Shown here: positions 16,616 through 46,397 of the stretch, in pieces
How the letters are laid out: each line of letters begins with the position of its first letter
Position numbering within the stretch: position 1 is the stretch's first letter
DNA from: Andalucia godoyi And28
Lineage: Eukaryota; Protista; Jakobida
DNA: 64,000 nt
Direction: 5' to 3'
Assembly: GCA_009859145.1 (NCBI GenBank)
Contig: VRVR01000039.1
Span: 7,909-71,908 of the forward strand
Made by a program: the position numbers and the translations under genes
The notes under the pieces: model-generated
Databases searched by the model: none
What the model was told of the DNA's origin: nothing
The model's input: only the letters and a program-made list of their open reading frames with translations

Positions 16616-17578
16616 ATGAACAGTTCGCGCGGTGAGAGTTCATTTTACGCGTCCAGCGGTCTTCCTCCGCACTTTGCGAGCTCATCGTTGTCGTCGTCGT
16701 CGTCGTCGTCGTCGTCTCATTCGCAGTATTCGCATCATTCGCAACATCAAATGCAACCGCAGCCGCTGAATGTGTCGAATGCGTCTGCTTCGAATCGCCG
16801 GTTTGAGTCGCCAAACCGCGCCAGGATAGCACAGCTGGCAAACAAGCTGAGTGGACTGCAGTCGAACCTCGAGGATGACAAGCAGCATCGTGTGGAAGCG
16901 ATTGAAGCGCGGCTGCGGACGACGGACGATCGGATCAATGCTCTTTTGTCAACTCAGGATAAGCGTCTGTTGCAGATCCGTGACGCAGTGTCACAGGCCG
17001 AGCGCGCTCTTGATGAAGAACGCAGAGCCCGCGAGGTGCTGTCGGAAGCCAAGGGCCGGGATGTTGCGGCCACAGACCTGAGGCTTCAGAGCGAGCTTGA
17101 TGGACTCGTCAAGGTTCGAAAGGAGTCTGAAAACAGAGTTCTTGCGATCTTGGACGATAAGATCCGGTCGCTGGTGATGGAGTTTAGCGCGTCAAACAGC
17201 AGCAGCAGCAGCAACTCGGGTCATCATCACTCTCATCATTCCCATCATGGGGCGACGACGCTATTTGGGGGGGTTGCGTTGGATGCAAGCAGAATCCGAG
17301 AGGCAGTTGCAATGGAAAAGTCAGCGCGCGAAGACGCAGAAAACAAGCTGATCCAGACTATCTCCGCCGAGCTTGCAGAGTTGGCGGAGTTGGCGGAGCA
17401 GGAACGCAGAACTCGCGAGCGGGCAGAGGACGCGCTGGTGCGGATGTTGCAGGATGCTGGAAACAGACTTGTTAGCGAGCTCGACGCGGAAAAGAGAGAC
17501 AGGCAAGAAACCGAAGAAACATTGCTGGCTCTTTTGGAAGACACGTGCGTCAAGATCAACGAAGCCAACGCCTTTTGA
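16616..17578 (+). CDS. SF-assemblin/beta-giardin family striated-fibre protein, 320 aa
   Basis: Short Ser/Pro-rich head, then a segmented coiled coil ending in RDRQETEETLLALLEDTCVKI, typical of SF-assemblins. Confidence 0.88.
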   Translation: MNSSRGESSFYASSGLPPHFASSSLSSSSSSSSSHSQYSHHSQHQMQPQPLNVSNASASNRRFESPNRARIAQLANKLSGLQSNLEDDKQHRVEAIEARLRTTDDRINALLSTQDKRLLQIRDAVSQAERALDEERRAREVLSEAKGRDVAATDLRLQSELDGLVKVRKESENRVLAILDDKIRSLVMEFSASNSSSSSNSGHHHSHHSHHGATTLFGGVALDASRIREAVAMEKSAREDAENKLIQTISAELAELAELAEQERRTRERAEDALVRMLQDAGNRLVSELDAEKRDRQETEETLLALLEDTCVKINEANAF

Positions 17579-18971: not shown

Positions 18972-20186
18972 ATGGCATCATCCTCAGCAGCAGCAGCAGC
19001 CCAGCAGGTTGTGCGGGACACTCGCATCAAGACTGCTGATGTGACTGCTACCAAAGGCCACGAATTCGAGGACTATGCCCTGAAGCGCGACTTGCTCAAG
19101 GGCATTTTCGAAGTTGGATTCGAAAAGCCGTCGCCTGTGCAGGAGGAGGCCATCCCAATGGCCCTTGCAGGCCGTGATATCCTTGCGCGTGCCAAGAACG
19201 GCACGGGAAAGACCGCTGCGTACTGTATTCCTGTGTTGGAGCGTTTGGATACGACGATTCCTACCATCCAGTCCCTCATTCTCGTTCCCACGCGTGAACT
19301 TGCGCTCCAGGTTGCGTCTGTTTTGAAGAACCTCGGAAAATATCTCGGTGTCGAAGTCATGTCCACTACTGGTGGAACGTCCTTGAAGGACGACATCGTT
19401 CGTCTGTACGGCACCGTGCACGTGCTCGTCGCAACTCCGGGTCGTGTGCTGGATCTGGCGCAGAAGCGCGTTGCCAACTTGGACAAGTGCGGTGTTTTGG
19501 TCATGGACGAGGCCGACAAACTATTGTCTCCGGAATTCCAGCCTGTGATCGAGTCCATCCTGGCGCTGCTTCCTGCGAGCCGCCAGATTTCGCTGTTTTC
19601 CGCCACTTACCCAGTTATGGTCAAAGCATTTGCTGAAAAGTATCTTCGCAAGCCGCACGTCGTCAATCTTATGGAAGAACTCACGCTGAAGGGAGTTACG
19701 CAGTATTATGCGTTCGTCGAGGAACGGCAGAAGGTACACTGCCTGAACACGCTCTTCTCGAAACTCGAAATCAACCAGTCCATCATTTTTTGCAATTCTG
19801 TCCAGCGCGTTGAACTGCTGGCAAAGAAGATTACCGATCTCGGATACAGTTGCTTCTACATCCATGCGAAAATGCCGCAGCAGGAAAGAAACCGAGTGTT
19901 CCATGATTTCCGCTCGGGTGCATGCCGAAACCTTGTCTGCTCGGACTTGGTGGCTCGCGGAATTGATATTCAGGCCGTCAACGTTGTCATCAATTTTGAT
20001 TTCCCAAAAACCGCTGAAACGTACTTGCACCGCATCGGTCGTTCTGGTCGCTTTGGACATCTTGGTCTTGCAATCAACTTTGTTACATTCGAAGACCGCT
20101 TCTCGCTCTTCAAGATTGAGCAGGAACTTGGAACGGAAATCAAGCCTATTCCCCCAGAGATCGACAAGCGGCTTTATGTCGCATGA
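18972..20186 (+). CDS. DDX6: DEAD-box RNA helicase DDX6/Dhh1, 404 aa
   Basis: [54 protein letters not shown]. Very close to the DDX6 pattern throughout. Confidence 0.97.
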
Positions 20187-20503
20187 TCTCCATGCCCGCA
20201 CGACTGACCTCGTTTCTCCTTGTGTCCGAGCGTTTTTCTTCCCTTTTCCTTTCCTTTTCCTTTTCCATCATCATCTTTTTCTTTTTTTCTTTTTCTTTTT
20301 CTTTTTCTTTTTTTCTTTTTTTTTTTTTTTTTGGGATGAAATAGATGATGAAGAGCAGCAGCTTGAGCTTGCTTCCTTTCCTTTCCTTTCCTTTCCTTTC
20401 CTTTCCTTCTTTTTACGCAGTAAAGTCGCTCGTCTTTGTCTACAGTCGCTCCCTCAATGTCGTGCAAATGCATGAGACAATTCTCTTCGCCATTCACTCG
20501 GAT

Positions 20504-21247
20504 TCACTCGTCGTCGAACTCCGGCTGTTTCAGAGGTACGTCAATTGTGTGCATGTTGGGATTGCTGGAGCCTGGGTTTCCTGCGGTGTCGTCGTCCTCC
20601 TCGATTCCCTCGATGCGAAATCTCGGCATCAGTCGCGCAACTGTGCTTCTTGCTGGGTCGACGACGAGGATTGTCTTACGAACGGCGGTGGCCAGCCGGA
20701 CCAGTCGCTGCAGCATCGTCCAGCTCATGTTTGGATCCACGCACACCTTGACCATGTATTTGGAGTGATCAAACCCCGGGCCGCGGGCGTACAGCACAAA
20801 GTCCGCGCCAAACTTGGATCCGCGCTTGACAATCCAGCCGCGATTGGTGAACATCTCAAACACTTCATATAGAATCGTCGATGGCCGTTGGTCCCGGTGT
20901 GGCGGAAATGCCGCATCAAGCGCAAACAATCGAGGGAAGCGACAGATCAGAAACCGGCATTCCATCCAATCGAGAACCAGTTGTGCAGCAGGATTCGCGA
21001 GAGACGTGTTGAAGAAGCCGAACTGCGTAACTTCAAACAACCACGTCACAATCGCACCGTGTTCAGACAAGGTCAGAACCCCAACGTTCGCCTCACAGGA
21101 AACGTGAATGACACACGGGAATGCACAGGACTCTTGGTTTGGATCGAGAATGCATAAGACACGCTCAAAGCGCGAAAACCGGTCATCCTGCTCCTCCTGC
21201 TTCACGGCTGTTGATGCGGCGGCGACGACTCCTACTCCTACATCCAT
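20504..21247 (-). CDS. TSEN2: tRNA-splicing endonuclease catalytic subunit Sen2, 247 aa
   Basis: RGWIVKRGSKFGADFVLYARGPGFDHSKY...VRK retains the Tyr-His-Lys triad. GP-x-F-x-H favours Sen2 over Sen34. ATG at 21247. Confidence 0.85.
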   Translation of the reverse strand: MDVGVGVVAAASTAVKQEEQDDRFSRFERVLCILDPNQESCAFPCVIHVSCEANVGVLTLSEHGAIVTWLFEVTQFGFFNTSLANPAAQLVLDWMECRFLICRFPRLFALDAAFPPHRDQRPSTILYEVFEMFTNRGWIVKRGSKFGADFVLYARGPGFDHSKYMVKVCVDPNMSWTMLQRLVRLATAVRKTILVVDPARSTVARLMPRFRIEGIEEDDDTAGNPGSSNPNMHTIDVPLKQPEFDDE

Positions 21248-21418
21248 CCACAAACTCAGCTTGTGCCGCTGTCCCAAACAACAAACAACAAACAACAAAC
21301 AACAAGCAACAAACAAGAATGATAAAATTGGACTCAAAAACGATTCCGGCAATTTTCTGCAACTCTTTGAAGCATTTTATCAAGCAGATTTTATTTATTT
21401 ATTTATTGTTATTAATTT

Positions 21419-21503
21419 TTTTGTTTTGTTTTGTTTTGTTTTGGTTTGTTTTGTTTTGTTTTGTTTTGCTTTGCTTTGCTTTGTTTTGTGTTGTTTTGTG
21501 TTG
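21419..21503. repeat. Degenerate (TTTTG)n / (CTTTG)n microsatellite
   Basis: Directly visible upstream of Sen2. Confidence 0.9.
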
Positions 21504-21887
21504 TCTTGAATGCTTCATCTTTTCTTGCTTTTCGTGACATGATGGTGCAGGTGGTGAAAAGGCTGATGTGCCATTCCGATGTGCACGACACCATTGTGAA
21601 CTGAAGTGACGTGGCGCGGGCGCACTTCCTACTGAAACCATCATCTTTTTTGTACGTTGCGGTCTCTGGTACCAGGAAGCGTCTGTTCGTCGGACGTTTG
21701 CACGAAGAACTTCCGTATTCCTTGCATTTACGTATTTAAATAGGTGAGCCTTCAAGAAAAGGAGCATGCGCGTGCAGCACGACGTCAATTGCAGCAGAAA
21801 CGAGCGGGAACAAACTGTCGGATGTGACGTTTGGACCTTGGCAGTGCGTCCCATTTGCGCCCAGCGGGTGCAGTGCGGCGCGGTGCT

Positions 21888-24800
21888 TTAGGACTTGATG
21901 CAAAAGAGGACAAATACGCCTTGGAAAATGTCGGAAGCTGCAAATGCAATGTCCAGGGTCGGAAGATTCACCGAGGTTGTTGTGGGAGTGACGCCGTTTC
22001 CGGCGCTGTTGTCCTGTATGTACACGGTCTCTTGGTTTGCGGATGCTCCGAGATTCACAGTTTTGGCAGTGTGTCTGTGCACAATGTCGACGTTCGTGAT
22101 GGTGGACGCGGGGGTCTTCAAGACCCGGCTGTCCGAGGGTGACGAGTTCGGATAGAGCTGCGGCGCTGTGCCCGAGGTGATCGGGTTCGGTACGGCTGGG
22201 TTGCTGTACTGGCCAGGATCGAGGCCCACCGGCACACGGCCGAAAGAATCCGTGAAGGGCGTGTACCCGCTTGGGCACGTGATGCCCTTGTACATGATGA
22301 TCGTTCCTGCAGGTACCAGGTCGTTTCCGCCTTCCCGAACCTTTCCGTTGGCCACATTGAAATTACCAGAGGAGACTGTCACAGAGCTGGAGATAAGGCG
22401 AATGCCGGAGCTCTTGACTTCCACACGTAGAGCGTCTGTCTGGTCGCGTATGGAAGTCGTCGTGGCAGTCAAGCGGATTTCGTTTGTCACTTTCGACCCG
22501 GCTGCAACATCGGATCCCCTGGTCCCAATGACAATTTGTGCAGAAGATCCATTAGTCATCATGTATAAGAGAGAAGAGTGGAAAGCGGTCAGAGATGTCG
22601 ATGAAAAGTCGATGATGTTGAACTGGTTTGCATCCTGAAGGGAAAGCGAGGAGGAACGAAGAAGAATGCTCGACGGATATCCCGCAGACAACGCTGATCT
22701 GGAGCCAACCTCAAATGAACCCGTATTCGCCGTCTCGGGCACGAACTGGACTTTTTGCACCCAAGAAACCCGCAAATTCATGGACCGACAGTTGATGAGC
22801 GACGCGAAGAATGGATCGGATGTGAGAGTGGTCATGGATCCTATGGAAATTTCCGAAGCCGCTGCTTGTGCAATGACAGAAAATACAGAAATGGAGGACA
22901 AGGGTGCCGTGATCTTCGTAGAAGCAGCCTCCACGGTTAGCCCCCCGTCTCCGGCCACCCCAGTACCAGGTCGCAACAGAATCGGTCCACCGACTCCGGA
23001 CGATCCTGATGCTGTTCCGCCAAGAATCGACACCTGACCGCCAGTCGCCTGCGAGACTTGCTGCCCTGCAATGGTTAGCGTCTTTCCCGCAACGGCGGAC
23101 GTAGACGTCGGTGGAAGCTTGATTGTCGCGGCGGACTGCGCAGACCCAACCAAGATGACATTGTCTCCGGACGACGAGAAAATGGAAAAGGTCGGCGTGT
23201 CCCAAGATGTAGAGGGGGAGACAGCCTGAATTGAACCAGGGTTCACAAGAAACCAAGAGGAGCTCGTCTCCAGCTTGATCATCGAGCTGTTCACCGACAG
23301 TTTGTTGGCAGAGCTGCTTTCTGTTACAGTGAATGACGACTTGGTGCTCAAAGAAATGTCGCTGCCAAACCCAATACTGGAAGCACCTGAATAGAGTGAG
23401 AGCTTCAGGTTGTTGGCGGTCAGTTGAAGCGACGCTAGCGGGTGGACAGCAATCGATGGAGAAGACATGTCGATGGACATGTTCCCCGATGCCGATTGGA
23501 TTGTACTGTTTCCCTCCAGAAGGATTCCTGCGGCGGAGTGCAGAGCGAGATAGCCATCTGTCGATTTGATTCGCAGAGAGTCTGTTCCAGCGGACGACAG
23601 CATGGTTCTGTTGAAATCAATGCTGAGCGTTCTGCCGGACACAATCCCAGAACTTCCATTCACCTTCAGCAAGCCAGCGACACTCTGCCCAATCTGCACG
23701 GTCGATGCACCCAGAACGCTGAGTCCTTGCGCCGGAACAAGAATGAGACTTCCGGGGGTCATGAGGACGCCTGTTGCGGTGTCCAGCATCAGACCGGATT
23801 CAGCATTCCACAACCATGGGCTGCTTCCTGCCAGCCGCACACCGGATTTCGATGTGTTGAGGATCACTCCAGGAGCCACTATCGAGACATTATTCAGTTC
23901 CTCGACCAACGACGCTGTTGCGAAGTTGAATTGGAATGTGTGGCTCGTGAGCATTGAGGAGGTCGCTCTCAGCGAGCCACTTTGGGAAGGATTACCAACG
24001 ACAAGAAGAGAGCTGGATTCGTGGTACACTACAACGCCCTGCGCAGCACTGAGTTGAAGGACAGACGAAATGGTGCTAATCCTGCCATTTTCTGCGAAAA
24101 TATACATATTGGATGAAGAAATGTTCTGTGCGGCATTCAGCAGCCGGATTGACTGCGTGCGGTCGGCGATCGAAAACGTGACCCCTTGCGTTGTGGCCGA
24201 AATATTCACAGACCCGGCTGCCGAGAGAAACAGAGACGCTTGTGTAGTCCAGGACGACCGCTGCAGATCAATGGCGGAAGTGGCGGAAGTTATTTTTGCA
24301 GAGTCTCCGACAACAGAAAAGTCGCTGCCAACAGACAGTAAACCCGCCCCGAGGAGACGAACATGCGCGGAGGAGTTTCTGACCACGAAATTGAGATCCC
24401 CGACAACCGTCTGCAGTGTGTTATTGGAGAAATGGATGGACACATCAGACAGCGTCCCGGTCGTGGGACTCTTTCCTCGAACTGCGTAGTCGGATCCAAC
24501 AAGCAGATCCCCAACGGGATTGGTAATGTACTGCACCTCGATCTTGCTGACCTTGATCCGCGAGTCGCGGAAGTTGATGGACAGGGAAGGGCTGTCCATG
24601 GACTGACTTGACGCATTAACCACCAAGTAGGACAGGAAGCAGTCAGTGGTCGCAACTTGCGACGGACAAAAGGCCATGGCCACCGGGACCCTGGCGGACC
24701 TGTTTGCATTCAAAAGAATATCACCTTCCGTGGACAGCAAAACCGACGGCACTGTATGGTCGTCAAGGAACTTGAGTGCCGAGCCGGTTACAAGCGACAC

Positions 24801-26582
24801 GTGGCTGTATCCCGTCGTATTGGAGGACAGTAGTGAGGTGCCGAGCGCGATCTGCGTGTCTGCAGACATTTCCATTCCTTTTTCATAAATTTTTGTGAAG
24901 GAGTGCGGATTCCGGCCTCCATCGGCAGCGAAACGGAGAAAAGACGAAGAGTACAGCGCAACTCCGTCGAACGTCAGAGTTCCGGATGCGTTGAATGCGA
25001 CCCTTTTCGGAGAAGACGCGATGCTGAACAAAATCATTTCTTGCTCCGATATGCTCATTCGGAACGCCTGCTGGAAGGTGATCGAGGAATTGGCCATTCC
25101 GAATACCGACAGCTGCAGACTGCTGGGCGATGCAATGGAGAAGCTCTTGGTTGTGAACACTGTGGAATTCGGAGTCATCTGCAGGAGCGAATAAAGCAGC
25201 GAGGAATGGTCCAAGCGAAGAACGTGATTCTCCAGATCTGCCTGAATCATAAAGTTCGTCGTCGTCGGCACCGACGGAAAATGTGCATGAGAGGCGCCAA
25301 GAATGATGCTTGGTTGGGAGGACGATATCAAGACAGTCTGCGGAGCGGAGCTCAGGGACCCGTTGCCCACGACAAAAGCTGCTGATACGGCGCCTGCGAT
25401 GCACATGCCGGCTCTTTCGTGACCTGTCTGACACCCGGGCAACACCACGACATTTGACGTCGAAGACAAGGAAAGCTGGCGCTGCGACGTGATGCTGCAA
25501 TTTCGACTCGACAAGAACGCGAACGCGTCCGCCCGAACGACCACTCCGCCACGCGCAGCATTGACGTGCAGCGGACCCGTGTGGTTCTCTGTGGTTTCCA
25601 AGAAATTCAGCTTGAATACTGCCGAGTCGTTTCTCGACACGACAGACTCTGCTTCCAGGACAATCGAGTTTCTTGTGGAGATCTGAAGCCCAGAGGCAAA
25701 TGCAAAAGAGTACGGCTCCGCAATGGCGATGGACATAAAGGCGCTGCGGGAGATGTTTAGATTTGCGGATGCGATCCACGAGTCCGCGATGGTGAAGCCG
25801 TTGGCAACGAGCGTTGCCGGCTCTCTGGTCGTCATTGTGATTCCTTTTGCCACGGACAGCACAGTGTGTCTGTCTTGAACGATGGTCAGGGCACCCTCCG
25901 TGAACCTCAGAGTGGACAGTTCTCCAACGGATGTCGAATGAGTGGAAACAAACGTTTCCGAGGTTAGTGTTTGTGTGTTCAGCAAGCCGTACACCGCACT
26001 CGACGTGCTTCCCATTCGCAGAACGAGTGCACCACCGTGAAGAACATCGAAGGTGTTCCTCAGCTTTCTCAAAGTAGTGTTGTGTGTCTCGTCTGCAAAC
26101 ACAAGACGGGTGCCGCCGAACGGAGACGACATGGAAACGAAGGTCTGGCCCTGTGGATTCGACACGGCAAGAGTCCTTGCAGAAATCGACTTTGATGCGA
26201 CCGAAGCGATGTCCAGATTTTGCCAGTCGGTTCCGAAAATACAGACATACACATACGCAAGTGCACCAACGACGATCCAGCACATGATAATGTGAGCCAC
26301 TAAAAGGGCAAACTTCTTATCGATCCTCTTGAATATCGGTCTTCGTCGCGGCAACGGAACCCCGTTAAACAGGACTTCCACATTCTCCGGGAACTCTTCC
26401 GTCTGCTTCTGTGCATAAAGCCGGTTTTCCTGCTCTTCCGTGTCCAGCGGGGGAAGGTGCTGCTGCTGGATCGCAGAGCCTGGAGGCCGAATCGGCACCA
26501 GTGTCTTGCGAGGAGGCTGCATCCCCACCGTAACCGCAGCAACCGATGAAAAATTGTGAGACCGCGGAGATGCCGTCATCAT
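21888..26582 (-). CDS. Giant type II membrane protein A, 1564 aa, with beta-rich stalk and C-terminal phage tail-collar-like domain
   Basis: Uninterrupted ORF. One TM helix near residues 92-117, many N-x-S/T sequons, one GG-x-h-x-h-x-x-G repeat module, C-terminal PAGTIIMYKGITCPSGY...GRVPVG, an HRH motif and terminal FVLFCIKS. Confidence 0.88.
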   Translation of the reverse strand: MMTASPRSHNFSSVAAVTVGMQPPRKTLVPIRPPGSAIQQQHLPPLDTEEQENRLYAQKQTEEFPENVEVLFNGVPLPRRRPIFKRIDKKFALLVAHIIMCWIVVGALAYVYVCIFGTDWQNLDIASVASKSISARTLAVSNPQGQTFVSMSSPFGGTRLVFADETHNTTLRKLRNTFDVLHGGALVLRMGSTSSAVYGLLNTQTLTSETFVSTHSTSVGELSTLRFTEGALTIVQDRHTVLSVAKGITMTTREPATLVANGFTIADSWIASANLNISRSAFMSIAIAEPYSFAFASGLQISTRNSIVLEAESVVSRNDSAVFKLNFLETTENHTGPLHVNAARGGVVVRADAFAFLSSRNCSITSQRQLSLSSTSNVVVLPGCQTGHERAGMCIAGAVSAAFVVGNGSLSSAPQTVLISSSQPSIILGASHAHFPSVPTTTNFMIQADLENHVLRLDHSSLLYSLLQMTPNSTVFTTKSFSIASPSSLQLSVFGMANSSITFQQAFRMSISEQEMILFSIASSPKRVAFNASGTLTFDGVALYSSSFLRFAADGGRNPHSFTKIYEKGMEMSADTQIALGTSLLSSNTTGYSHVSLVTGSALKFLDDHTVPSVLLSTEGDILLNANRSARVPVAMAFCPSQVATTDCFLSYLVVNASSQSMDSPSLSINFRDSRIKVSKIEVQYITNPVGDLLVGSDYAVRGKSPTTGTLSDVSIHFSNNTLQTVVGDLNFVVRNSSAHVRLLGAGLLSVGSDFSVVGDSAKITSATSAIDLQRSSWTTQASLFLSAAGSVNISATTQGVTFSIADRTQSIRLLNAAQNISSSNMYIFAENGRISTISSVLQLSAAQGVVVYHESSSLLVVGNPSQSGSLRATSSMLTSHTFQFNFATASLVEELNNVSIVAPGVILNTSKSGVRLAGSSPWLWNAESGLMLDTATGVLMTPGSLILVPAQGLSVLGASTVQIGQSVAGLLKVNGSSGIVSGRTLSIDFNRTMLSSAGTDSLRIKSTDGYLALHSAAGILLEGNSTIQSASGNMSIDMSSPSIAVHPLASLQLTANNLKLSLYSGASSIGFGSDISLSTKSSFTVTESSSANKLSVNSSMIKLETSSSWFLVNPGSIQAVSPSTSWDTPTFSIFSSSGDNVILVGSAQSAATIKLPPTSTSAVAGKTLTIAGQQVSQATGGQVSILGGTASGSSGVGGPILLRPGTGVAGDGGLTVEAASTKITAPLSSISVFSVIAQAAASEISIGSMTTLTSDPFFASLINCRSMNLRVSWVQKVQFVPETANTGSFEVGSRSALSAGYPSSILLRSSSLSLQDANQFNIIDFSSTSLTAFHSSLLYMMTNGSSAQIVIGTRGSDVAAGSKVTNEIRLTATTTSIRDQTDALRVEVKSSGIRLISSSVTVSSGNFNVANGKVREGGNDLVPAGTIIMYKGITCPSGYTPFTDSFGRVPVGLDPGQYSNPAVPNPITSGTAPQLYPNSSPSDSRVLKTPASTITNVDIVHRHTAKTVNLGASANQETVYIQDNSAGNGVTPTTTSVNLPTLDIAFAASDIFQGVFVLFCIKS

Positions 26583-27345: not shown

Positions 27346-30300
27346 CTACAGTTTGTAGCAGACCAAGAGATATAGTCCAGGAACGATGTTGTGCACCGGC
27401 ACGCCTGTTGTGGATGCAGCGGCCACCGTTGCGCTTGTGGATCCCGAGTAGGATTGCTGCGCAACGGTCTGTGAACCGCCGCCGCAGCAGTTGGAATTGG
27501 GGAGACTCACGCCTCCGTGAGTGTGGCTCAAACTCACGCTAATGGTTTGACCGGGAACGCTGAACGATCTTGTGGTCGAGGATGGGGGAAATGGGAGGCT
27601 GGAGCCCTGCTGGGGACTGTAGTCAGCCCATGCGCCGCTTGTCTGCGTTGGCATTCCAAACACCGCTCGTCCCCGTGCTTCTGTGAGTTCTGCATACCCG
27701 GCTGGACATGCGATTCCTTTGAACATGATGACAGAATTCGCTGGAATTAGGGCATCTCCAGATTCCTTCACCTTCCCCGAAACGAGCAGATCACCAACAA
27801 CACTCACAGCCCCCGAGGTCCCTGCACGAAGCACGTAGTTGGATGATGATATGTCGAGTCGTGCGTTTGTGCTGGCTGCATTGGTGTCCCATATCTGCAC
27901 GCTTGTTCCTCGAATCACCACGGTTTCCGTTCCGCTGGAGGCAGCGTCCGTCGCCGACACTCCGATCTGGATCACGGTGCCAGCTGCCGACGCAGTTTTC
28001 AGGTACATCGAGGTTTGATGGAACAGCAAGGCCTGCGTACTGCGCAGCGCTAGGCCTGATGCTGCCGACGCTGCCGAAAATTCCACACTGGATCCCGTGA
28101 ACGTCATCGTTGGAGCATTCGACGAAGCCCCCACGATGAACATCGGGCTCGCTCCTTCGAACTGAACGGAGACCCGATTCGAACACAAGGTCGTTGTGTT
28201 GCCTCGAAGTTTGATGTAGGACGGATACCTATTCGTGACATTCGTGTCTCCGATCTCAACTGTCGTCTCCACTGCTGGGAACGGCTGCTCCGTAAGCACG
28301 CGAAATAACGTTCCCACAGTTGCTGTGTACGCGTTGGCCCTCGTCATGATTGAGTTCGTGTACGAAGCGTCAACCATGGAAATGCTGGGATTTGAGTTGC
28401 CGATCTCGATACGATCTCCGCCGAACGACTCGGAATCAGACGAATGCACTGCTAGTATTGGATCCGAGTATGCGTGGTTCTGGACAGTCAGCGAATGGGT
28501 TTCCAGCATCGTGCTTCCGACTGTGTTTCCAAGGCCAGTTCGTAGATGGATGGATCCGCCGCGGCCAGAAATGCTGTCGGCAGCGAACAAGCGAATCCAG
28601 CCTCCACCGCTCTGCGACCGCCCCAACCCTGCATACAGATTCAGACTGCCACCCGTTAACGACGCATTGTTGCTGGAGGCCTCGCCAGCTGCGAGTGAAA
28701 TCGATCCGCCGTCTCCGCAGTTTGAGCAAGCAGATTGTCCATAAATCTTTAAATCACTGCCATGTGCGGGACTCACTGACGCCGGCATGGATATTTCAAC
28801 CCCTGCTTGCGTAGGCCCCACTGAGATCAGCAGCGGGTTTGTAGGCACCGACGGTCTAACAATCATTCCTTGTGAACTTGTGAAGACTGAAAAGGTGCCC
28901 GTGGACGTGAGGGCCATGGTCCCCGCATCCAGCCGTACCTCCCCAGTCCTGTTCACACGAAAAGCAACATCATCGATTTCAAGGGACGTCCGCAGCTTCC
29001 TGTCTCGGAAGATCACAGACTGTGCTCGCAGCCGCAGATAGTTCGTGTATGTGGACGCATCAGAAAACTCTCCAATCTCAATGTTGGTGTTTGCAGAAAC
29101 AGTGTCCTCCGTCTTCAGATTTATGGACTGGCCGGCCAATGTCTTAAACGTCGATGCTCGGATGTAAACAAGGTCTGTGTAGTCCGTTGCAGACGGTGAA
29201 ATGGAGGAATTGGTGTTTCCAATCAAAACATGGTCACCTGCGGGATCTGCGTCCATTGTGCCCACAACAAAGAAGGGAGTGAGCTGTGACCAGGAGCGAA
29301 CAGAAAATGCATGTGCGTCAACGAGCACGGAGCCGGTTGAAGAGGGAGAATAAGAGGCGGACGCGCTGCCACCTGCGCGCAAAAGGATTGACCCCCCGGT
29401 GGACGTCGAGGAACTGTCTCCGGCTGATATGGCTACATTTCCGCCAGCGGCATCCCCGAACCCGTTTCCAGCTTCCAGAATGAGCGATCCGCCCGCAGCA
29501 GCAGACTGCAGGGTATGTCCATAACCGGCTCGAACGATAAAATTGCCTCCGTTTCCACAATCAGCGCATGCGGTCTGTCCGGTCAGCACGGTGGACGAAG
29601 CAGCACCCGTGCTCACAGGACGGGAAATCATCGTGGCAGACGTGGACGTTCCCAAGGCCAAGTACGTCGGCAGCGCAGGATCTCGCGACGTAAGGACGTA
29701 GCCCGCAGCACCGGATGTGACGGAAACTTTGTCGGACGAAACAGTCAGCAGCGGGACAGAAATCGAAATCTGGCCCGATCGGTTGAAATCGATTGCAGTG
29801 GTGCTGACTGTTACAGACGGCGTTCCGTTGGCGTCCATCAGCGAAATGTTCCGCGCGCGGATCAGTATGTTTTCCGGGACAAGCGATGACGAAGAAGACT
29901 GCCCAATGACAATGGTCGCATTCGCCGTTTCTGCAATCATGGAAAGGTAAGAAGCTCCTTTCAAGGAGATCACGTTGCCGCGAGCCTCAATCAAGTCCGT
30001 GTAGTCGGGAGAGGAAACTCCAGCAGCCATGTTGCCGATGCGCACTCGGTCTTCACTCTGATTTGCTGTCGAGATATCGAGCAGTGTCGAAGACCGTGTT
30101 GTACTGCGTACGAAAAAGGACTGCGTTAAAATACTGACGTTACCGTCTCGAATCCTCGAAGACGCCGCCATACCACTGGAGATGATGACGTCTCCTCCGT
30201 CCCCTCCGTATCCACCGCCCAGAGTAAAGGCGGCACCTGTCGCTTGCTGGGCGCCCGCTCCGGCTTGCACATAAACACTGCCTCCAGCAGCGGACGCGGA

Positions 30301-33300
30301 AGAACTCGCAGCCGTGGATCCATTTCCTGCGAATATGTGAACATCGCCGCCGGCTCCGCTCAGACTGGACTGACCCAAAATTGCAGTCAGCGACGCCGCC
30401 TGAGAGGTGGAAACCGGTCGGGAATGCGTCACAGAAGCGTTGTCAGACCCCCACTGCACCGTGAGAGAGGCAAGACTGGAAGAAGGGGAAACCGTCAGGC
30501 TCTGTGTGGAAATGTACAAGTCGTTCAGCAGGGACAGGCGCGAGCTAGTGCTGGAGAAAGATATGTTTCCAGACGGAACCCCTGCGAACAGAGACGAATT
30601 GTCTAATCGGAGGAGGGAATTTCCGGCTGCAACAACGACTGCCTTCTCTGTCAGCGTGAGCATAGTCCGCAGTGAACTGCTGAGCAATTGCACAGCATCC
30701 GCTTGAATGTTGACGACTGCTGTTGCATTAGATCCCACGAAAATCTTCGGGGAAAGGAGAGCAATGCTCTTGGAAGCCAACGTCAGGTTCGACGTAGTGA
30801 TGGAGCAGGACGGCGTGTCCATGATCCACGATCCACGATCGATGCGAAAAGACGACATGCTCGCCTCCAGCGCAAACGATTCGGAAGCGACCAAAAGAAT
30901 GCTCGAAGAGGAAAGACGGGTGTCGAGGCCCGAAAAAGAAATGTTCTGACCTGCAAGCGAAACACTAGAAGCATCGTGATCAAGCGTGATGCGAGAGGAG
31001 CCGCGCGGGTCGAAAAAGAAGAGCCCAGAGGAATTCAGAGCAAACCAAGGTGTCAGAAATCTAGTCGCGGAAACACTGAGCACAGTTGAACTGAAGTTAA
31101 TGTTGCCGAGAACGGCGGAATTCGCGTTACCAGCAGAGAGGATAATTGAGCCTGCCGTTTCCGTGGCAGAACTTCCGCCCTGGATACAGACGTCGCCACC
31201 CGTGCCATTGTGCGAGCTTCCTCCCGCGAAATAAAGCGAGCCTCCGCTGCCGCGAACTGAAGCGTTGATGAAGGACCCGGCGGAAAGGAGCATGCGACCT
31301 CCACTTGTGCACTGTGGACAGCTGTCGGCGGCGGAGAGCGAAAACTCGGTGGTGGCGCGCGACACGTCCAAATGCGCCACATGCGAGACCGCAACGCTGC
31401 CGTTGGAAAATCGGCGGACGTCCATCCACACTGTACCGGTGGATGCATCGGAGGCAACCAGAGATTGGGCGCGGAAATTCAAACTCGCGTTTCTTCCGGT
31501 GACGGACGCGTTTTGAAGGTCAAGCACCATCGAGGCTCCGTCCACTTCAAGAGTGTTCCCGTCAAGCACAAGCCCTCCAATATGCAGCTTCCTGGATCCC
31601 TCCAGAAGAAGCGGTTCCGGCGAGGACAGAACAATGCTCCCACGACTTGACAGAAAAGTCGAGTTTTCAAAGCTGATCGACAACGGGGCAAGGCTTCCGG
31701 TTTGGCGACTTCGACCGCATAAACTCCAGTCGGAATCGAGGAATACGTGTCCCTGATGGTTGAACAGGATTCTAGCCGACACGGAGAGAGCGGAAAGCTC
31801 CCCTGATAAAAAGTCAAGGTGGAGGCTGCTGGACGATATCCGAGAATTCGTGTTGTTGACGACAATTGCGGTAGAAATATTCGTGCAGTCGTCCTTGCAG
31901 AACTTCAGTGGGCTGAACACATTGACGGAGTTACTGGCAGACAGTACCATGGTGCCACCGTTCGAAAGCTCGACTGTGGTCAGTCCGGACTCCGACGCTA
32001 CGTATCCGCGACCACCGGATGTCGACAGAATCAAGGTGCGGTTCAAGCGCAATCCACTTGGTGAGAGATGGAGCGTCTCGCTTCCGTTCTGATGGAACCC
32101 GAGTGTCCCGTCCATCGAGACATGTGTTTTGTCAATTCTCAGCAGACCTGAGGCGTCAAAGGCTATCACAGATGCGGGATTCTGCGAATGGAAAAGTGTC
32201 ATCTGTGACCTCACTGCTGACACGGCGAATCCAGATGACATGGACCATTCCACTTCTGCGGCCTCAAAAAAATGCTTCAACCGCGTTGTGTTTGAATTTC
32301 CTGTTCTCAATGTGCTGTTGCAGAAGAAATCTTGACAACGAACCACTGTTTCAGAAAGATCCAGAAAGGGAGAGGATTCGGTTGGACGATGAGATATTCT
32401 CAGACTGGATGGGGACGCACGAAGCACGACGTTCGACGACAAGTAGAATGTGGTGTGCGTGAACCGGATGCCCGCCTCCACAAACGAATCAGAGTCACTG
32501 CGATTTCCGGAGGGTACAAGGAAGTGCGATGATGCATTTCCGAGTACCGCAGAATACGATGCGGAGAACCTCTCCAGAACGGGGCCGTGAAAATCAAACG
32601 TCATCGTTGAGTTTGGAGAGGTGTACGAGAAGGCCGCTGTGGCTGGGAAAACCACGCCTCCTGGAGCAAGTATCTGCAGTGGCGACTGCGGGTCGTCCCA
32701 CAACAGCTTTCGGAAGCTGATGGAATCGATCTGGACGGACGAGCCAGAAAATCGAACGGGGCCATTTCCTCCGTCTATCACTAATCCGGATGCTGCCGAA
32801 AGGGAAACTGGTTCAGAAAGGGAGCTTGATATGGATCTCTCGGACACATTCCAGTTCAAGAAGGTCAGCGTGCGGTCGAAAATCTGGAAACCTTTGAGAC
32901 GCACAGTGGAGAGAACGGTTTGGTCCGTTTCAAACACCATGTCGGTTCCCACGGAGAAAATGATCTTGTTTGATCCGGACACCACAAGCGTTCCATCTGC
33001 AAACACGAGAGAGCTTGTTCGTGTGCTTGGACCCTGTGTCAAGCCGCCGCCCTCAAGCGCGTGCAAGTCCGTTCCAAAAAAGGCAGCAGAAAACGTGGAG
33101 GAAACGTTCAAAACTGAGGATGACAGCGACTTGGACACGACGTCTCCTGGGAAAACAACCCCGTGCGAGGTAGAGCGCATGACGTCCACTCCACCAGACG
33201 AGATTTCGAATCCCGATGCAGCCGTGGAGATCTCGAACTGAGGAACGGTCGCGCCAGTTTGCAACACCAGCGCAGAGGACCCCGCGGCTGAAACAATGTG

Positions 33301-33945
33301 CAAGTCTGACGATCCCGAGGTGGACTGCAGCGTCGCGATCTGATCGGACGATCGGACGATGCTGATTTCTTCCGTGGTGAGCTTCCCTGACGAGATGGAC
33401 TGTGATGCCATCGACTGGAGAGACAGTCTGGATGGTTCGTGTATTTCAGAGACTTTCAGTCCAAGATAGGTGACGAATCCTGCCAGAACCCAAAACGCGA
33501 TCATGTGAACCACTGCCAGTGATTTCCACACACGCCGCTCGATCAGTGCTCGCCGCTCTCTGATCGGTTCTAAATCCACCTCCGGATACAGCGTTTTGAA
33601 GTCTGGAACCAGGAAAAGCGGATTCCCAAACTCTGCGTTCTTCTCTGGATGAGGGGAGGCGGACTGAATCATGTCTTCTGCCGCCCTGCTATCTCCGCCC
33701 TCGGCACGAACGACGCTCGCCAGTGCATACCGCTTCCTGTATTCCTGCTCCTTGTCAAACAGCACTTGCAGGCGCTGTTGCCTCGCCGCATAGTCGTCCA
33801 GCGGCGTCGAAACTGGACTTTGCACCGGCGGGGGATCATTCAGCATCGGCGATGCGCTTCCACCCATCCTGGAAAATCCAATCAACGGAGGAGGAGCCCG
33901 CACTCGGAAGGCTCCTGAGCTGGGTTTTTCTTTTGCTGCGTTCAT
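27346..33945 (-). CDS. Giant type II membrane protein B, 2199 aa, paralogue of protein A with expanded repeat modules
   Basis: Uninterrupted ORF collinear with protein A. One TM helix (SLAVVHMIAFWVLAGFVTYLGL), four Gly-rich modules, C-terminal PANSVIMFKGIACPAGY...GRAVFG, an HTH motif and terminal YLLVCYKL. Confidence 0.88.
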   Translation of the reverse strand: MNAAKEKPSSGAFRVRAPPPLIGFSRMGGSASPMLNDPPPVQSPVSTPLDDYAARQQRLQVLFDKEQEYRKRYALASVVRAEGGDSRAAEDMIQSASPHPEKNAEFGNPLFLVPDFKTLYPEVDLEPIRERRALIERRVWKSLAVVHMIAFWVLAGFVTYLGLKVSEIHEPSRLSLQSMASQSISSGKLTTEEISIVRSSDQIATLQSTSGSSDLHIVSAAGSSALVLQTGATVPQFEISTAASGFEISSGGVDVMRSTSHGVVFPGDVVSKSLSSSVLNVSSTFSAAFFGTDLHALEGGGLTQGPSTRTSSLVFADGTLVVSGSNKIIFSVGTDMVFETDQTVLSTVRLKGFQIFDRTLTFLNWNVSERSISSSLSEPVSLSAASGLVIDGGNGPVRFSGSSVQIDSISFRKLLWDDPQSPLQILAPGGVVFPATAAFSYTSPNSTMTFDFHGPVLERFSASYSAVLGNASSHFLVPSGNRSDSDSFVEAGIRFTHTTFYLSSNVVLRASPSSLRISHRPTESSPFLDLSETVVRCQDFFCNSTLRTGNSNTTRLKHFFEAAEVEWSMSSGFAVSAVRSQMTLFHSQNPASVIAFDASGLLRIDKTHVSMDGTLGFHQNGSETLHLSPSGLRLNRTLILSTSGGRGYVASESGLTTVELSNGGTMVLSASNSVNVFSPLKFCKDDCTNISTAIVVNNTNSRISSSSLHLDFLSGELSALSVSARILFNHQGHVFLDSDWSLCGRSRQTGSLAPLSISFENSTFLSSRGSIVLSSPEPLLLEGSRKLHIGGLVLDGNTLEVDGASMVLDLQNASVTGRNASLNFRAQSLVASDASTGTVWMDVRRFSNGSVAVSHVAHLDVSRATTEFSLSAADSCPQCTSGGRMLLSAGSFINASVRGSGGSLYFAGGSSHNGTGGDVCIQGGSSATETAGSIILSAGNANSAVLGNINFSSTVLSVSATRFLTPWFALNSSGLFFFDPRGSSRITLDHDASSVSLAGQNISFSGLDTRLSSSSILLVASESFALEASMSSFRIDRGSWIMDTPSCSITTSNLTLASKSIALLSPKIFVGSNATAVVNIQADAVQLLSSSLRTMLTLTEKAVVVAAGNSLLRLDNSSLFAGVPSGNISFSSTSSRLSLLNDLYISTQSLTVSPSSSLASLTVQWGSDNASVTHSRPVSTSQAASLTAILGQSSLSGAGGDVHIFAGNGSTAASSSASAAGGSVYVQAGAGAQQATGAAFTLGGGYGGDGGDVIISSGMAASSRIRDGNVSILTQSFFVRSTTRSSTLLDISTANQSEDRVRIGNMAAGVSSPDYTDLIEARGNVISLKGASYLSMIAETANATIVIGQSSSSSLVPENILIRARNISLMDANGTPSVTVSTTAIDFNRSGQISISVPLLTVSSDKVSVTSGAAGYVLTSRDPALPTYLALGTSTSATMISRPVSTGAASSTVLTGQTACADCGNGGNFIVRAGYGHTLQSAAAGGSLILEAGNGFGDAAGGNVAISAGDSSSTSTGGSILLRAGGSASASYSPSSTGSVLVDAHAFSVRSWSQLTPFFVVGTMDADPAGDHVLIGNTNSSISPSATDYTDLVYIRASTFKTLAGQSINLKTEDTVSANTNIEIGEFSDASTYTNYLRLRAQSVIFRDRKLRTSLEIDDVAFRVNRTGEVRLDAGTMALTSTGTFSVFTSSQGMIVRPSVPTNPLLISVGPTQAGVEISMPASVSPAHGSDLKIYGQSACSNCGDGGSISLAAGEASSNNASLTGGSLNLYAGLGRSQSGGGWIRLFAADSISGRGGSIHLRTGLGNTVGSTMLETHSLTVQNHAYSDPILAVHSSDSESFGGDRIEIGNSNPSISMVDASYTNSIMTRANAYTATVGTLFRVLTEQPFPAVETTVEIGDTNVTNRYPSYIKLRGNTTTLCSNRVSVQFEGASPMFIVGASSNAPTMTFTGSSVEFSAASAASGLALRSTQALLFHQTSMYLKTASAAGTVIQIGVSATDAASSGTETVVIRGTSVQIWDTNAASTNARLDISSSNYVLRAGTSGAVSVVGDLLVSGKVKESGDALIPANSVIMFKGIACPAGYAELTEARGRAVFGMPTQTSGAWADYSPQQGSSLPFPPSSTTRSFSVPGQTISVSLSHTHGGVSLPNSNCCGGGSQTVAQQSYSGSTSATVAAASTTGVPVHNIVPGLYLLVCYKL

Positions 33946-44369: not shown

Positions 44370-46397
44370 CTAGAAATTCGCAGCCGAACTGCTGGTGCTC
44401 AGCAACTTCGAGATGACTCCCGAAAAGTCAGACAAATCTGCAACACCTTTCCCAGAAGCCTGCCACTGTACGCACGCCGTGATTCCGGAATCAAAGCCGA
44501 CCGCCAGCATCACTGCCCCCCCGTGCCCAATGAAGGTGGTCAGACAGCGAGCATTTCCTGTGTGCTCGTCGGAAACTGCAAGTACGGCATAGGGCAGCCG
44601 CCAATCCTCGATAGTAGCTGAGAGATCGAAAAGCAGCAGTTCGTTGGAGGAGAGTAAAACACAAAAGGAGGAATTTCTAAAGGAATGCCAGCACAAGGCA
44701 ATTGGAATCGCCCCCGAATTCGCGGATAAGAGTCCCCAAACATGTAACGGCTGTCGAGATCTACAAGAAGAAAGACGAAGGCATCCATCCGAAGAACCTG
44801 AAATACAAACATCTTCAATACTGGGACTAAACGACAAACAAGTGCACGCAAAGGACAATCGATCCGCCACTCTTCCGACTGCAGACACTCCGCCCAGGAA
44901 GCGTCGAACATCTCCTCTTGAGTGGGAGGCAAAGACCGGTCCATAGACATCTGTCGCAAACGCGAACCCATGCGAATCGCTCTGCAGCGATGCATCGTAC
45001 ACGCGAACACTTCGGCTGCTGTCCTCGCTGCTCACCAACGCGCCATCCCCAAATGGCTTCCATTTTCTCATCAGCGATATTCGGTACCTCCCAGACAGGG
45101 ACATCCCAAAGTCCGTCAGCGATTCACTCACGGCATCTTGTACGGGAACGACGACCCACAAATGAACCACACCGGTTTCGTCAATCGAGACGAGTTGAAT
45201 GGTGGTGGATATTCGAGAACTTCCAGGAGAGTCTTCGATATGGCACAACTTCACTATCGGAGCCACATGGTTCTCGTCGGATTTCCAGTCAGTGGAATAA
45301 CAAGGTTGTCGAACAGCGAAACTCTTGTTGTTGGTGGTGGTGGTGGTGTTGCTGTTGCTACTGCTGCTGTTGGCATCAGAGTCGTCGTCCGGGGATCGAA
45401 CACCTGCAATGGACAGATCCCACATGACAAGCGATCCATCACACGAACCTGCAAAAACCAAGTCCGGAAACCCTGGAACAATGCAAATCTGAGAAATCTG
45501 GTCTTCACAACCAAGAATGAACACGGGCGTCGTGGTCAGGCCTCTACTTCCAGAGATCAGCGCGACGTCGTAACAGCAGACTACTCCACGCTGCAGAGTA
45601 ACGTGTCGCTTGTCGGAAAATTCGAACCGCGTTGGGGAATATGCTACCAGCAATTGTGCGGGCGTAGGATACGGCAACAAGCATTGAACCAGCCGCCCAT
45701 CAATGATGTTTTCATGCCCTACGAGGAATCGCTTCAAATCCTTCGGCGTGTCTTTCTTTGCCACAATGTCCGCATATGATTTCTTCGCTTGAGTGGTATC
45801 ATTTTCTTCGAGCATGCCGCTGACAATTGGCAAAACAGCACGCAGAAAGGCATCCATTGATACGGAGCCGCCTTGATTCATGAGGTACTGCAAGTCCCTG
45901 TCCGCCCCGTCACTTGCCATGGACACCCTTAGGTCTTCGGGGACCTGGCATGCAAACGCGCAGAGTTCAATGTCCTCTGTCTGGCAATCGACGATCGTCC
46001 GCATGTTGGAATCAGGGATTTGGGCACTGGCAAACGCAACGTGCGAAGACATGGCCAAAACATCACTTTGCGACAGCGGAGGAAGGTCCAGCAGTGTGTA
46101 TTGCACTTCATCAAACTCCAGGATCCGCATCAGTCCTCGCCGTCGTTCGAAATCCCCATCTCCAGCCCTCGCTCTCGACGCCGATGCCGACGTCACCTTC
46201 TTTGGCGCTCTCACAAGAATCTCGGATCGAACAGGAGCAGCACTCGTCGACGACAGAGCACCCGCTCGCAAGGAAGCCGCACCCGTCGTACGGCTCGCAC
46301 TCGGCAGAGAAGCTGGTGCGTGCCTCACCTCGGTCTCTTGGTACTCTTCAAACTCTTCGTTCTCATATTCTTCAAAATCCTCTTCATAGTCATCCAT
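44370..46397 (-). CDS. DYNC2I1: Dynein-2 intermediate chain WDR60 (FAP163), 675 aa
   Basis: Acidic YEEDFEEY start, LLDLPP, CQTEDIE, RQPCYSTD and WD40 repeats. ATG at 46397. Its stop lies 3 nt from the SF3B3 stop. Confidence 0.82.
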   Translation of the reverse strand: MDDYEEDFEEYENEEFEEYQETEVRHAPASLPSASRTTGAASLRAGALSSTSAAPVRSEILVRAPKKVTSASASRARAGDGDFERRRGLMRILEFDEVQYTLLDLPPLSQSDVLAMSSHVAFASAQIPDSNMRTIVDCQTEDIELCAFACQVPEDLRVSMASDGADRDLQYLMNQGGSVSMDAFLRAVLPIVSGMLEENDTTQAKKSYADIVAKKDTPKDLKRFLVGHENIIDGRLVQCLLPYPTPAQLLVAYSPTRFEFSDKRHVTLQRGVVCCYDVALISGSRGLTTTPVFILGCEDQISQICIVPGFPDLVFAGSCDGSLVMWDLSIAGVRSPDDDSDANSSSSNSNTTTTTNNKSFAVRQPCYSTDWKSDENHVAPIVKLCHIEDSPGSSRISTTIQLVSIDETGVVHLWVVVPVQDAVSESLTDFGMSLSGRYRISLMRKWKPFGDGALVSSEDSSRSVRVYDASLQSDSHGFAFATDVYGPVFASHSRGDVRRFLGGVSAVGRVADRLSFACTCLSFSPSIEDVCISGSSDGCLRLSSCRSRQPLHVWGLLSANSGAIPIALCWHSFRNSSFCVLLSSNELLLFDLSATIEDWRLPYAVLAVSDEHTGNARCLTTFIGHGGAVMLAVGFDSGITACVQWQASGKGVADLSDFSGVISKLLSTSSSAANF

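Follow-up and report, generated by a model that had tools for sequence, protein, structure and literature searches.

Tips with His-x-His (HxH) metal sites occur on the tail fibres of phages, tailocins and contractile injection systems. In R-type pyocin fibres, T4 gp37 and P2-type spikes, three symmetry-related HxH pairs make an octahedral Fe site on the axis of the trimer, and in T4 gp12 a single HxH binds Zn (PMC6116203). In pyocin and phage fibres these buried sites are thought to be reference points for the folding of the three chains (PMC6116203), and the solved relatives of the tip described below are all trimers (PMC10966104; bioRxiv 10.1101/2025.04.20.649488). Here we describe gene A, and its neighbour and paralogue gene B, in a stretch of 64,000 nucleotides (nt) from the jakobid Andalucia godoyi And28 (contig VRVR01000039.1 of assembly GCA_009859145.1, positions 7,909 to 71,908); this whole stretch is called the window throughout. 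An earlier note on this DNA had read the end of gene A as the metal-stabilized, trimeric tip of a tail-collar-like fibre.

Protein A is very long and membrane-anchored, its membrane-distal end is a tip of the phage-fibre type, and it has diversified into paralogues. In this architecture, taken together with distant homology between the tip and phage fibre tips, we have considerable confidence. The domain is of a kind already known, and it is the host, the architecture and the Cys-pair variant of the tip that are new.

Results

A family of giant membrane proteins in jakobids

Protein A contains a sole hydrophobic segment (amino acids (aa) 90-118). Six Lys/Arg residues lie within the 15 residues before this transmembrane (TM) helix and one lies after it, which by the positive-inside rule would give a type II protein with its N-terminus in and its C-terminus out. 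Ser and Thr make up 25% of the ectodomain, which holds 25 of the 26 NxS/T sequons of the whole protein, and from its sequence protein A is probably heavily glycosylated. Pfam gave no known domain in the shaft of A, and self-BLAST gave no internal repeats in A or B.

The closest relatives of protein A are ANDGO_07176, ANDGO_08282 and ANDGO_02842 of A. godoyi, together with transcripts of Stygiella incarcerata. The succession of TM helix, shaft and tip is common to all eight full-length eukaryote-type relatives, and the shafts are homologous across the family (A and ANDGO_02842, for example, share 27% identity over 458 aa, E 8e-34). On these sequence comparisons, A is one of at least five paralogues in A. 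godoyi, with orthologues in Stygiella; since the shafts of all of these are homologous, the whole gene, from anchor to tip, would appear to be an old and vertically inherited jakobid family. What defines this family of giant type II membrane fibres, with members in A. godoyi and S. incarcerata, is a TM anchor, a Ser/Thr-rich shaft and a C-terminal tip, and A has all three. The tip of B is much nearer to the family norm than that of A: it is 46-50% identical to the tip of ANDGO_07176 over about 235-270 residues, and has HTH (27517-27525) at the place of the HRH of A. A word-indexed homologue search with full-length A returned protein A alone, probably because low-complexity words saturated the candidate list.

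The tip belongs to a Cys-pair family shared with bacteria and archaea

An exhaustive HMMER search of 1.84 billion representative proteins with a profile of the A and B tips gave 137 matches at E<=1e-3, with 10 at E<=1e-10 and bacterial members down to 1e-12. Most of these relatives are 150-600 aa long and have the tip at the extreme C-terminus, with one to several HxH motifs (most often two). A profile of 24 tips retrieved 900 proteins, all of them 'hypothetical' and nearly all without Pfam annotation, from Patescibacteria, Elusimicrobia, Spirochaetia, Myxococcota, Anaerolineales and a Pacearchaeota metagenome-assembled genome (MAG). An N-terminal hydrophobic segment is present in 202 of the 239 non-eukaryotic members.

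In an alignment of 101 sequences headed by the A tip, the invariant columns are Cys32, Pro33, Gly35, Gly44, His98, His100 and Cys157, which in A are Cys1436, Pro1437, Gly1439, Gly1448, His1502, His1504 and Cys1561. Protein A thus has every invariant column of the family, whose signature is a Cys-Pro-x-Gly turn in the head, the HxH and a terminal Cys-x-Lys strand. Both Cys are absent from all six phage tips examined. The HxH motif to which the earlier note drew attention proved to be conserved, with both His invariant in 101 of 101 sequences, and it is placed on a predicted beta-strand; the 152-aa tip of A has just two His, both within HRH. As the HRH lies within that predicted strand, both His side chains should point the same way. 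The HxH is kept in eight of nine eukaryote-type tips, and its number differs between groups: jakobid tips have one, bacterial tips typically two and phage tips four to six.

Several members of the family have features of their own. Some bacterial members have collagen triple-helix repeats upstream of the tip. In P0009 (754 aa), whose C-terminus is Cys-rich, 12 separate stretches match the head alone (profile positions 6-30), and the protein looks like a row of heads in tandem with no tails. P0007, P0019 and P0040 (1684-2187 aa, with a signal peptide) each have three to four tip-like stretches, internal rather than terminal, and the ends of P0007 and P0040 look coiled-coil-like by eye. The N-terminal part of P0135 faintly matches T2SSG (pseudopilin), and P0160, the Pacearchaeota MAG protein, is itself a member of the tip family. 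At one bacterial locus (L001, 7309-9381), the genes immediately upstream of three tandem tip-family paralogues are those for a pilin (N_methyl), T2SSE, T2SSF and Laminin_G_3; members in another genome (L002, 441-8570) are likewise found near T2SSE/T2SSF genes and a PilM-like gene.

Distant homology to phage fibre tips

For comparison with phages, we used a profile of six phage tips, one of which passes PF07484 (L010, a 'tail collar protein') and one of which passes Phage_fiber_2. The 101-sequence family profile aligned to it with an hhalign probability of 98.1% (E 7e-14), the 135 aligned columns extending from the head to the tail, and the nine eukaryote-type (jakobid) tips alone aligned with a probability of 85.7% (E 5.5e-6) over the 33 columns of the head only. 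By tblastn, family members matched phage proteins annotated as tail fibre, tail collar or minor tail protein; E was as low as 3e-11 and coverage of the tip as high as 94%. Among the PHROG families, phrog_8469 was matched by 10 of 24 family tips (bacterial members, best E 7e-19) and phrog_1800, 'tail collar fiber protein', by family members with E down to 2e-17. The phage-tip profile in turn matched solved structures, namely 8KEC (1.5e-36), 6OV6 (2e-9), 9QGO (9e-9) and T4 gp10 (2FKK, 0.01); the family profile matched 8KEC at 0.0027, and the best PDB match of the 24-tip profile was 9QGO, co-linear over head, HxH and tail (E 0.08). As judged by these profiles, each link from the jakobid tip to the Cys-pair clade, from there to phage fibre tips and from these to the solved tips is significant.

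The profile similarity of the head segment to collar-containing phage proteins supports kinship within a superfamily, not membership of the PF07484 family. The tail-collar-like tip of the earlier note was therefore right in part: profiles point to distant kinship with the C-terminal tips of phage tail-fibre, tail-collar and gp10-type proteins, but the tip is not a member of PF07484.

A virus of archaea, Caudoviricetes sp. vir515 (L006, 1-1353; host Methanosarcinales), has two tandem 'tail protein' genes (phrog_5795). The second of these proteins has a full collar-type tip, and 94% of the length of this tip aligns with a bacterial member of the family.

Direct searches and the structural model

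The earlier note had named hmmscan against PF07484 as a check, and this gave zero matches at E<=10 for A, for its last 170 and 270 residues and for B. None of 24 family tips matched PF07484 at E<=1, and the best score in the tip family was that of P0135, with 13.2 bits over profile positions 1-16 only (the gathering cut-off is 24 bits). For Gp10_C (PF21939, gathering cut-off 27 bits), there was no match for A, B or the other jakobid tips; the distant member P0135 alone passed it (29.8 bits; profile positions 33-132 of 139), with P0045 and P0121 below the cut-off at 24-25 bits. The PHROG tail-fibre and tail-collar families (phrog_8469, 1800, 8763, 2097 and 5795) gave no match at E<=1 for A, B or the other Andalucia tips, and the best eukaryote-type result was that of a Stygiella tip against phrog_1800 (E 0.049). 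In 50,697 phage records, tblastn of the A tip found only two weak matches, both hypothetical proteins of Chryseobacterium phages (E 0.05-0.1).

The tip was modelled as an AlphaFold2 monomer from the 101-sequence alignment. The mean predicted local distance difference test score (pLDDT) was 65, and was above 90 in the head, 86 in the C-terminal strand, 65-77 in the HxH hairpin and poor in the linker. A model of the distal shaft together with the tip (aa 1140-1564; nine jakobid-type sequences) had a mean pLDDT of 37 and was unusable.

Gene model and feature positions

All of the peptides quoted in the earlier note, which gave no strand, are encoded by the minus strand and belong to the C-terminus of the gene A open reading frame (ORF); the plus-strand translation of 21888-22330 is unrelated to them and is interrupted by a stop. 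The first of them, GKVREGGNDLVPAGTIIMYKGITCPSGYTPFTDSFGRVPVG (GKVREGG...GRVPVG), is indeed there, as aa 1413-1453, but it starts at nt 22346, which is 16 nt outside the end (22330) that had been given for it. HRH is exactly where it had been placed, and QGVFVLFCIKS is C-terminal, as had been said, and is followed by TAA at 21888-21890. The EukProt gene model of gene A starts at Met21 and has 1544 aa. The features are listed in Table 1.

Table 1. Positions of genes A and B and of the parts of protein A (positions are those of the window; aa numbers are those of protein A unless stated otherwise).
Feature	Position	Strand	Basis or remark
Gene A, 1564-aa ORF, TAA stop included	21888..26582	minus	ORF translation
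Predicted N-terminal cytoplasmic tail, aa 1-89	26316..26582	minus	Charge distribution around TM helix
Predicted single TM/signal-anchor helix, aa 90-118	26229..26315	minus	Kyte-Doolittle 19-residue mean 2.53
Ectodomain 'shaft', aa 119-1412, Ser/Thr/Ala/Leu-rich, 25 NxS/T sequons	22347..26228	minus	Homologous to jakobid paralogue shafts
Tip domain, aa 1413-1564 (152 aa)	21891..22346	minus	Profile searches and 101-sequence alignment
Tip 'head', aa 1422-1453, LVPAGT...GRVPVG	22224..22319	minus	Best-predicted part; aligns to collar-type head of phage tips
Cys1436 (tip column 32)	22275..22277	minus	Invariant 101/101; proposed disulfide partner of Cys1561
Pro/Ser-rich variable linker, aa 1454-1500	22083..22223	minus	pLDDT <50; at place of HxH-repeat region of bacterial/phage relatives
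HRH, aa 1502-1504	22071..22079	minus	Both His invariant 101/101; start of predicted beta-strand
Predicted beta-hairpin from HxH on, aa 1501-1526	22005..22082	minus	Model strands 97-104 and 115-122, pLDDT 65-77
C-terminal strand QGVFVLFCIKS, aa 1554-1564	21891..21923	minus	pLDDT 86; invariant Cys1561 (nt 21900-21902), near-invariant Lys1563
Gene B, 2199-aa paralogue of A, same TM-shaft-tip layout	27346..33945	minus	TM aa 143-163 of B, 37 sequons, tip 27349-27777

A 466-aa ORF in another frame (24883-26283, minus strand) is nested wholly within gene A, and is most likely a by-product of the composition of gene A and not a gene. The intergenic DNA around gene A contains simple-sequence tracts, with a T-rich tract at 20274-20332, (TTCCT)x7 at 20373-20408, (CAAACAA)x6 at 21275-21316 and (TTTTG)x18 at 21419-21508, the last of these just downstream of the gene A stop.

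Genomic setting

By Pfam hmmscan, the nearest genes to gene A encode a DEAD-box helicase (18972-20186) and a tRNA-intron endonuclease (20504-21352), with a purple acid phosphatase gene slightly farther away. More distant genes in the window encode a 4486-aa axonemal dynein heavy chain, a kinesin, a HECT ligase, a DDB1/CPSF-type protein, an ABCG transporter and others, and these outlying genes are unbroken ORFs on alternating strands. The published Andalucia genome is about 20 Mb in size, compact and mostly intronless, with densely packed genes in opposite orientations (PMC7050145), and the compact, intron-poor packing of the window agrees with that description. In guanine+cytosine content (GC), GC at third codon positions (GC3) and codon usage, genes A and B are like their neighbours (the GC3 of gene A is 0.62, against 0.53-0.65 in the neighbours, and the correlation of relative synonymous codon usage is 0.79). 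Protein-domain scans of the window found no virus hallmark gene within its 64 kb, and scans of it for Rfam families and for tRNAs gave no match. The phage or viral setting implied by the earlier note is thus contradicted, and gene A is a eukaryotic nuclear gene for a membrane-anchored protein. A phage tail fibre would be expected to be joined to a baseplate or tail and to have its gene in a cluster of phage, prophage or tail-like type; gene A has no such cluster around it, and its product has a TM anchor in place of a baseplate-attachment domain. For genome scanning in general, a phage-like motif alone does not make a region viral.

Two further ORFs were noted in the window. A 734-aa ORF between the DDB1-like and HECT genes (44370-46574, minus strand) is without a Pfam match at E<=1e-5. 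A 320-aa ORF (16616-17578, plus strand) has a sub-threshold match to SF-assemblin/beta-giardin (27.3 bits, against a cut-off of 30.6), which is in keeping with a flagellate host.

Discussion

We propose that gene A encodes a cell-surface fibre of this jakobid. It would be a type II membrane glycoprotein with a short cytoplasmic N-terminal tail, one TM helix and a Ser/Thr-rich ectodomain of about 1300 residues, and its distal 150 residues would be a diverged member of the phage tail-fibre-tip superfamily, with a collar-type head like that of T4 gp10/gp12, an HxH strand and a returning C-terminal strand. At this tip, three chains would come into register, and their three HxH pairs would together hold Fe(II)/Zn(II) octahedrally at a single site on the three-fold axis, like those of gp12, gp37 and the pyocin fibres. 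Folding of a trimeric shaft might thereby start from the tip, which, at the far end of a fibre that projects from the cell, would also be the part that contacts a ligand. Taken as a whole, this picture of a jakobid surface fibre with a diverged phage-type tip, in the form of a metal-clamped, disulfide-locked and ligand-contacting trimer, is the best explanation that we have, and we consider it moderately probable.

Its components do not all carry the same weight. From the solved relatives (PMC6116203), three HxH pairs could be expected on the three-fold axis with octahedral Fe or Zn. Of the features by which such axial metal-site fibres are known, A has the conserved His-x-His on a beta-strand, the strand being predicted. 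The invariance of the His and their position on one face of that strand fit the metal-trimer idea of the earlier note, and by analogy we give a metal-clamped trimer of the A tip slightly better than an even chance. The Cys pair is missing from the six phage tips and present in the secreted bacterial clade and in the jakobid proteins, and from this we infer that an extracellular disulfide between Cys1436 and Cys1561 ties the head to the returning C-terminal strand. Head and strand would then pack together, locked by a bond suited to an extracellular protein.

Several results weigh against this interpretation. Neither A, nor its C-terminus, nor B matches any Pfam family at E<=10, and the same is true of PHROGs and NCBIfam at E<=10; phmmer searches of PDB sequences with the tip and with full-length A gave nothing meaningful (an antibody chain at E 0.018 only). 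The A tip is the most divergent of its group, and the middle of the tip is modelled at a pLDDT below 50. Foldseek comparison of the A tip model with PDB and BFVD gave zero matches at E<=1e-3, and thus nothing significant. Among viral proteins, the highest-ranking matches, all non-significant, were to a 'phage tail collar domain-containing protein' (E 0.024), to the 'microcystin-dependent protein' of a giant virus and to proteins of tail fibres and baseplates, and the top PDB match, also non-significant, was 6OV6, a putative receptor-binding tip of a long tail fibre from a Bizionia prophage (PMC11821841); the prominence of collar and tail-fibre proteins among the best matches is suggestive only. 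As far as the sequences tell, the connection between jakobids and phages is transitive, by way of the bacterial Cys-pair clade, and the jakobid tips alone are linked over the 33-column head only. One eukaryote-type protein, P0008 (2061 aa, from a Logan assembly), has no HxH anywhere, and seven bacterial tips also lack it, yet all of these retain the head, both Cys and the tail, so the HxH is not indispensable for the domain. Finally, genes like those for type IV pili or the type II secretion system (T2SS) stand beside tip-family genes in two of three sampled bacterial contexts, which suggests roles other than phage-like receptor binding. A prophage context was found in none of the three, and with two of them pilus-like the cellular clade would have a role of its own.

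How far do these results favour other explanations? If the resemblance to phage tips were a chance motif match in a low-complexity, Ser/Thr-rich protein, the want of a direct Pfam, PHROG or PDB match for A and the non-significant Foldseek results would be just what one would see; but a profile of only two sequences would then hardly reach bacterial members at HMMER E down to 1e-12 among 1.84 billion proteins, nor would head, HxH and tail be co-linear with seven invariant columns, nor hhalign return E 7e-14 against phage tips, and we regard coincidence as extremely improbable. A very low probability also attaches to genes A and B being fibres of a phage, a giant virus or an integrated viral element. 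It is true that all of the named relatives of the tip domain are virion or phage-tail-like proteins, that one weak Foldseek match is to the giant-virus 'microcystin-dependent protein' and that genes A and B adjoin each other. However, core eukaryotic housekeeping genes lie on the flanks with zero virus hallmark genes in 64 kb, composition and codon usage are host-like, both proteins have an N-terminal membrane anchor, and the other paralogues are found under separate Andalucia gene models, with expressed orthologues in Stygiella transcriptomes. Because of its eukaryotic neighbours, its host-like composition, its TM anchor and the distribution of its paralogues, gene A is not a phage or viral fibre, and an integrated viral element was rejected on the same grounds.

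The other two alternatives accept that the tip is related to those of phages. In one, it forms no metal-bound trimer in this eukaryotic lineage, and the HxH is a relic or has some other role, such as surface contact or pH sensing. P0008 and the seven bacterial tips, which keep the remaining signature without an HxH, would agree with this, as would the single HxH of jakobid tips beside the two typical of bacteria and the four to six of phages, and the monomer model is only moderately confident around the motif. Against it, both His are invariant in all 101 aligned sequences and present in eight of nine eukaryote-type tips, they are the only His in the A tip, and one HxH site is enough for T4 gp12 too (PMC6116203); we find this alternative rather unlikely. 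The chance is appreciable, if still clearly the smaller one, that the tip is a C-terminal register for trimerization and folding and nothing else, with ligand binding elsewhere in the 1300-residue ectodomain or with the protein serving as a component of a glycocalyx or coat. The role thought to be played by HxH metal sites in the folding of pyocin and phage fibres (PMC6116203) speaks for it, and so do the collagen repeats upstream of the tip in some bacterial members and the fact that the conserved columns belong to the structural head, the HxH, the Cys pair and the tail, with hypervariable sequence in all other parts of the tip. But the hypervariable region between head and tail is the receptor-contacting part in the phage relatives, so that variability would fit binding equally well, and the tip is the membrane-distal end of the molecule. 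We continue to prefer a trimeric surface fibre whose tip both nucleates folding and contacts a ligand, in so far as we may infer this from the relatives.

What that ligand might be is a matter for conjecture, and the term 'receptor-binding' is, for this tip, purely conjectural as well. Jakobids feed on bacteria, and phage tips bind bacterial surface glycans. For these two reasons, the binding of prey or of a substrate is the most attractive guess, and a bacterial surface polysaccharide or substrate would be the most plausible ligand; by this analogy alone, we consider such a ligand possible but doubtful. In its fullest form, the idea would be that a bacterivorous eukaryote took over the receptor-binding tip of phages or bacteria and set it, as a metal-clamped trimer, on long membrane glycoprotein fibres, the paralogues of which act as receptors for prey recognition or adhesion. 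This scenario we think improbable as it stands; if it is true, a phage tail-fibre module would be the basis of a eukaryotic system for recognition at the cell surface.

The domain occurs in two settings that appear to be undescribed. One is that of the giant membrane-anchored surface proteins of jakobids, all 'hypothetical' and none with a Pfam domain. The other comprises about 900 small secreted proteins of bacteria and archaea, which have no Pfam model, are distinguished by an additional Cys pair and often, in uncultured lineages, have type IV pilus genes next to their own. The literature searches aimed at the jakobid proteins found no description of them, and no paper was found that joins 'tail fiber-like' with type IV pili or Patescibacteria. 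Should the jakobid fibres prove to be trimeric and exposed at the surface, they would represent a clear reuse of a prokaryotic or viral recognition module by a bacteria-feeding eukaryote, and would be a candidate for prey recognition by such flagellates.

Comparison with known systems

The closest non-eukaryotic relatives of the tip in the window are the bacterial and archaeal Cys-pair proteins (about 900, for example P0116, P0002 and P0206). They have the same Cys-Pro-x-Gly-aromatic turn in the head, the same HxH and the same terminal Cys-x-Lys strand as A, but are 150-300 aa long with a signal peptide, whereas the jakobid proteins have 1300-2600 aa and a TM anchor, and they usually have at least two HxH.

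Among phage proteins, T4 gp12 and the PF07484 domain offer a head of the type seen in A (a Pro-x-Gly strand, an aromatic residue, a Pro-x-Gly-aromatic turn, Gly/Asp-Arg, hydrophobic residues and Gly), and, like the tip of A, they form the C-terminal end of a fibre. T4 gp12 also has a single HxH, as does A, and there it binds Zn on the three-fold axis (PMC6116203). The phage 'tail collar protein' that passes PF07484 (L010) is part of the phage-tip profile that matches the family of A. Unlike these proteins, A has a much shorter segment between the halves of the collar head, two added invariant Cys, a eukaryotic host and a membrane anchor. The C-terminal domain of T4 gp10 (PF21939, PDB 2FKK) is the only Pfam domain that any family member (P0135) passes at the curated cut-off; gp10 is, however, a component of the baseplate and not a free distal tip like that of A.

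The tips of the long tail fibres, T4 gp37 (2XGF), C24 (6OV6) and gp34 of Anabaena phage A-1(L) (8KEC), have a chain that leaves a collar-like head, runs through HxH strands and ends back in the collar, and they are trimers with HxH sites on the axis. They give no significant direct match to A in sequence or fold, and their several HxH repeats form a long needle, in contrast to the one HxH of A. In Pvc13, the tail fibre of the Photorhabdus virulence cassette (9QGO), head, HxH and tail are co-linear with the family tips. Pvc13 is part of a bacterial contractile injection particle and, unlike A, is without a membrane anchor and without the Cys pair; its tip, which is of this type, is aimed at eukaryotic and not at bacterial cells (bioRxiv 10.1101/2025.04.20.649488).

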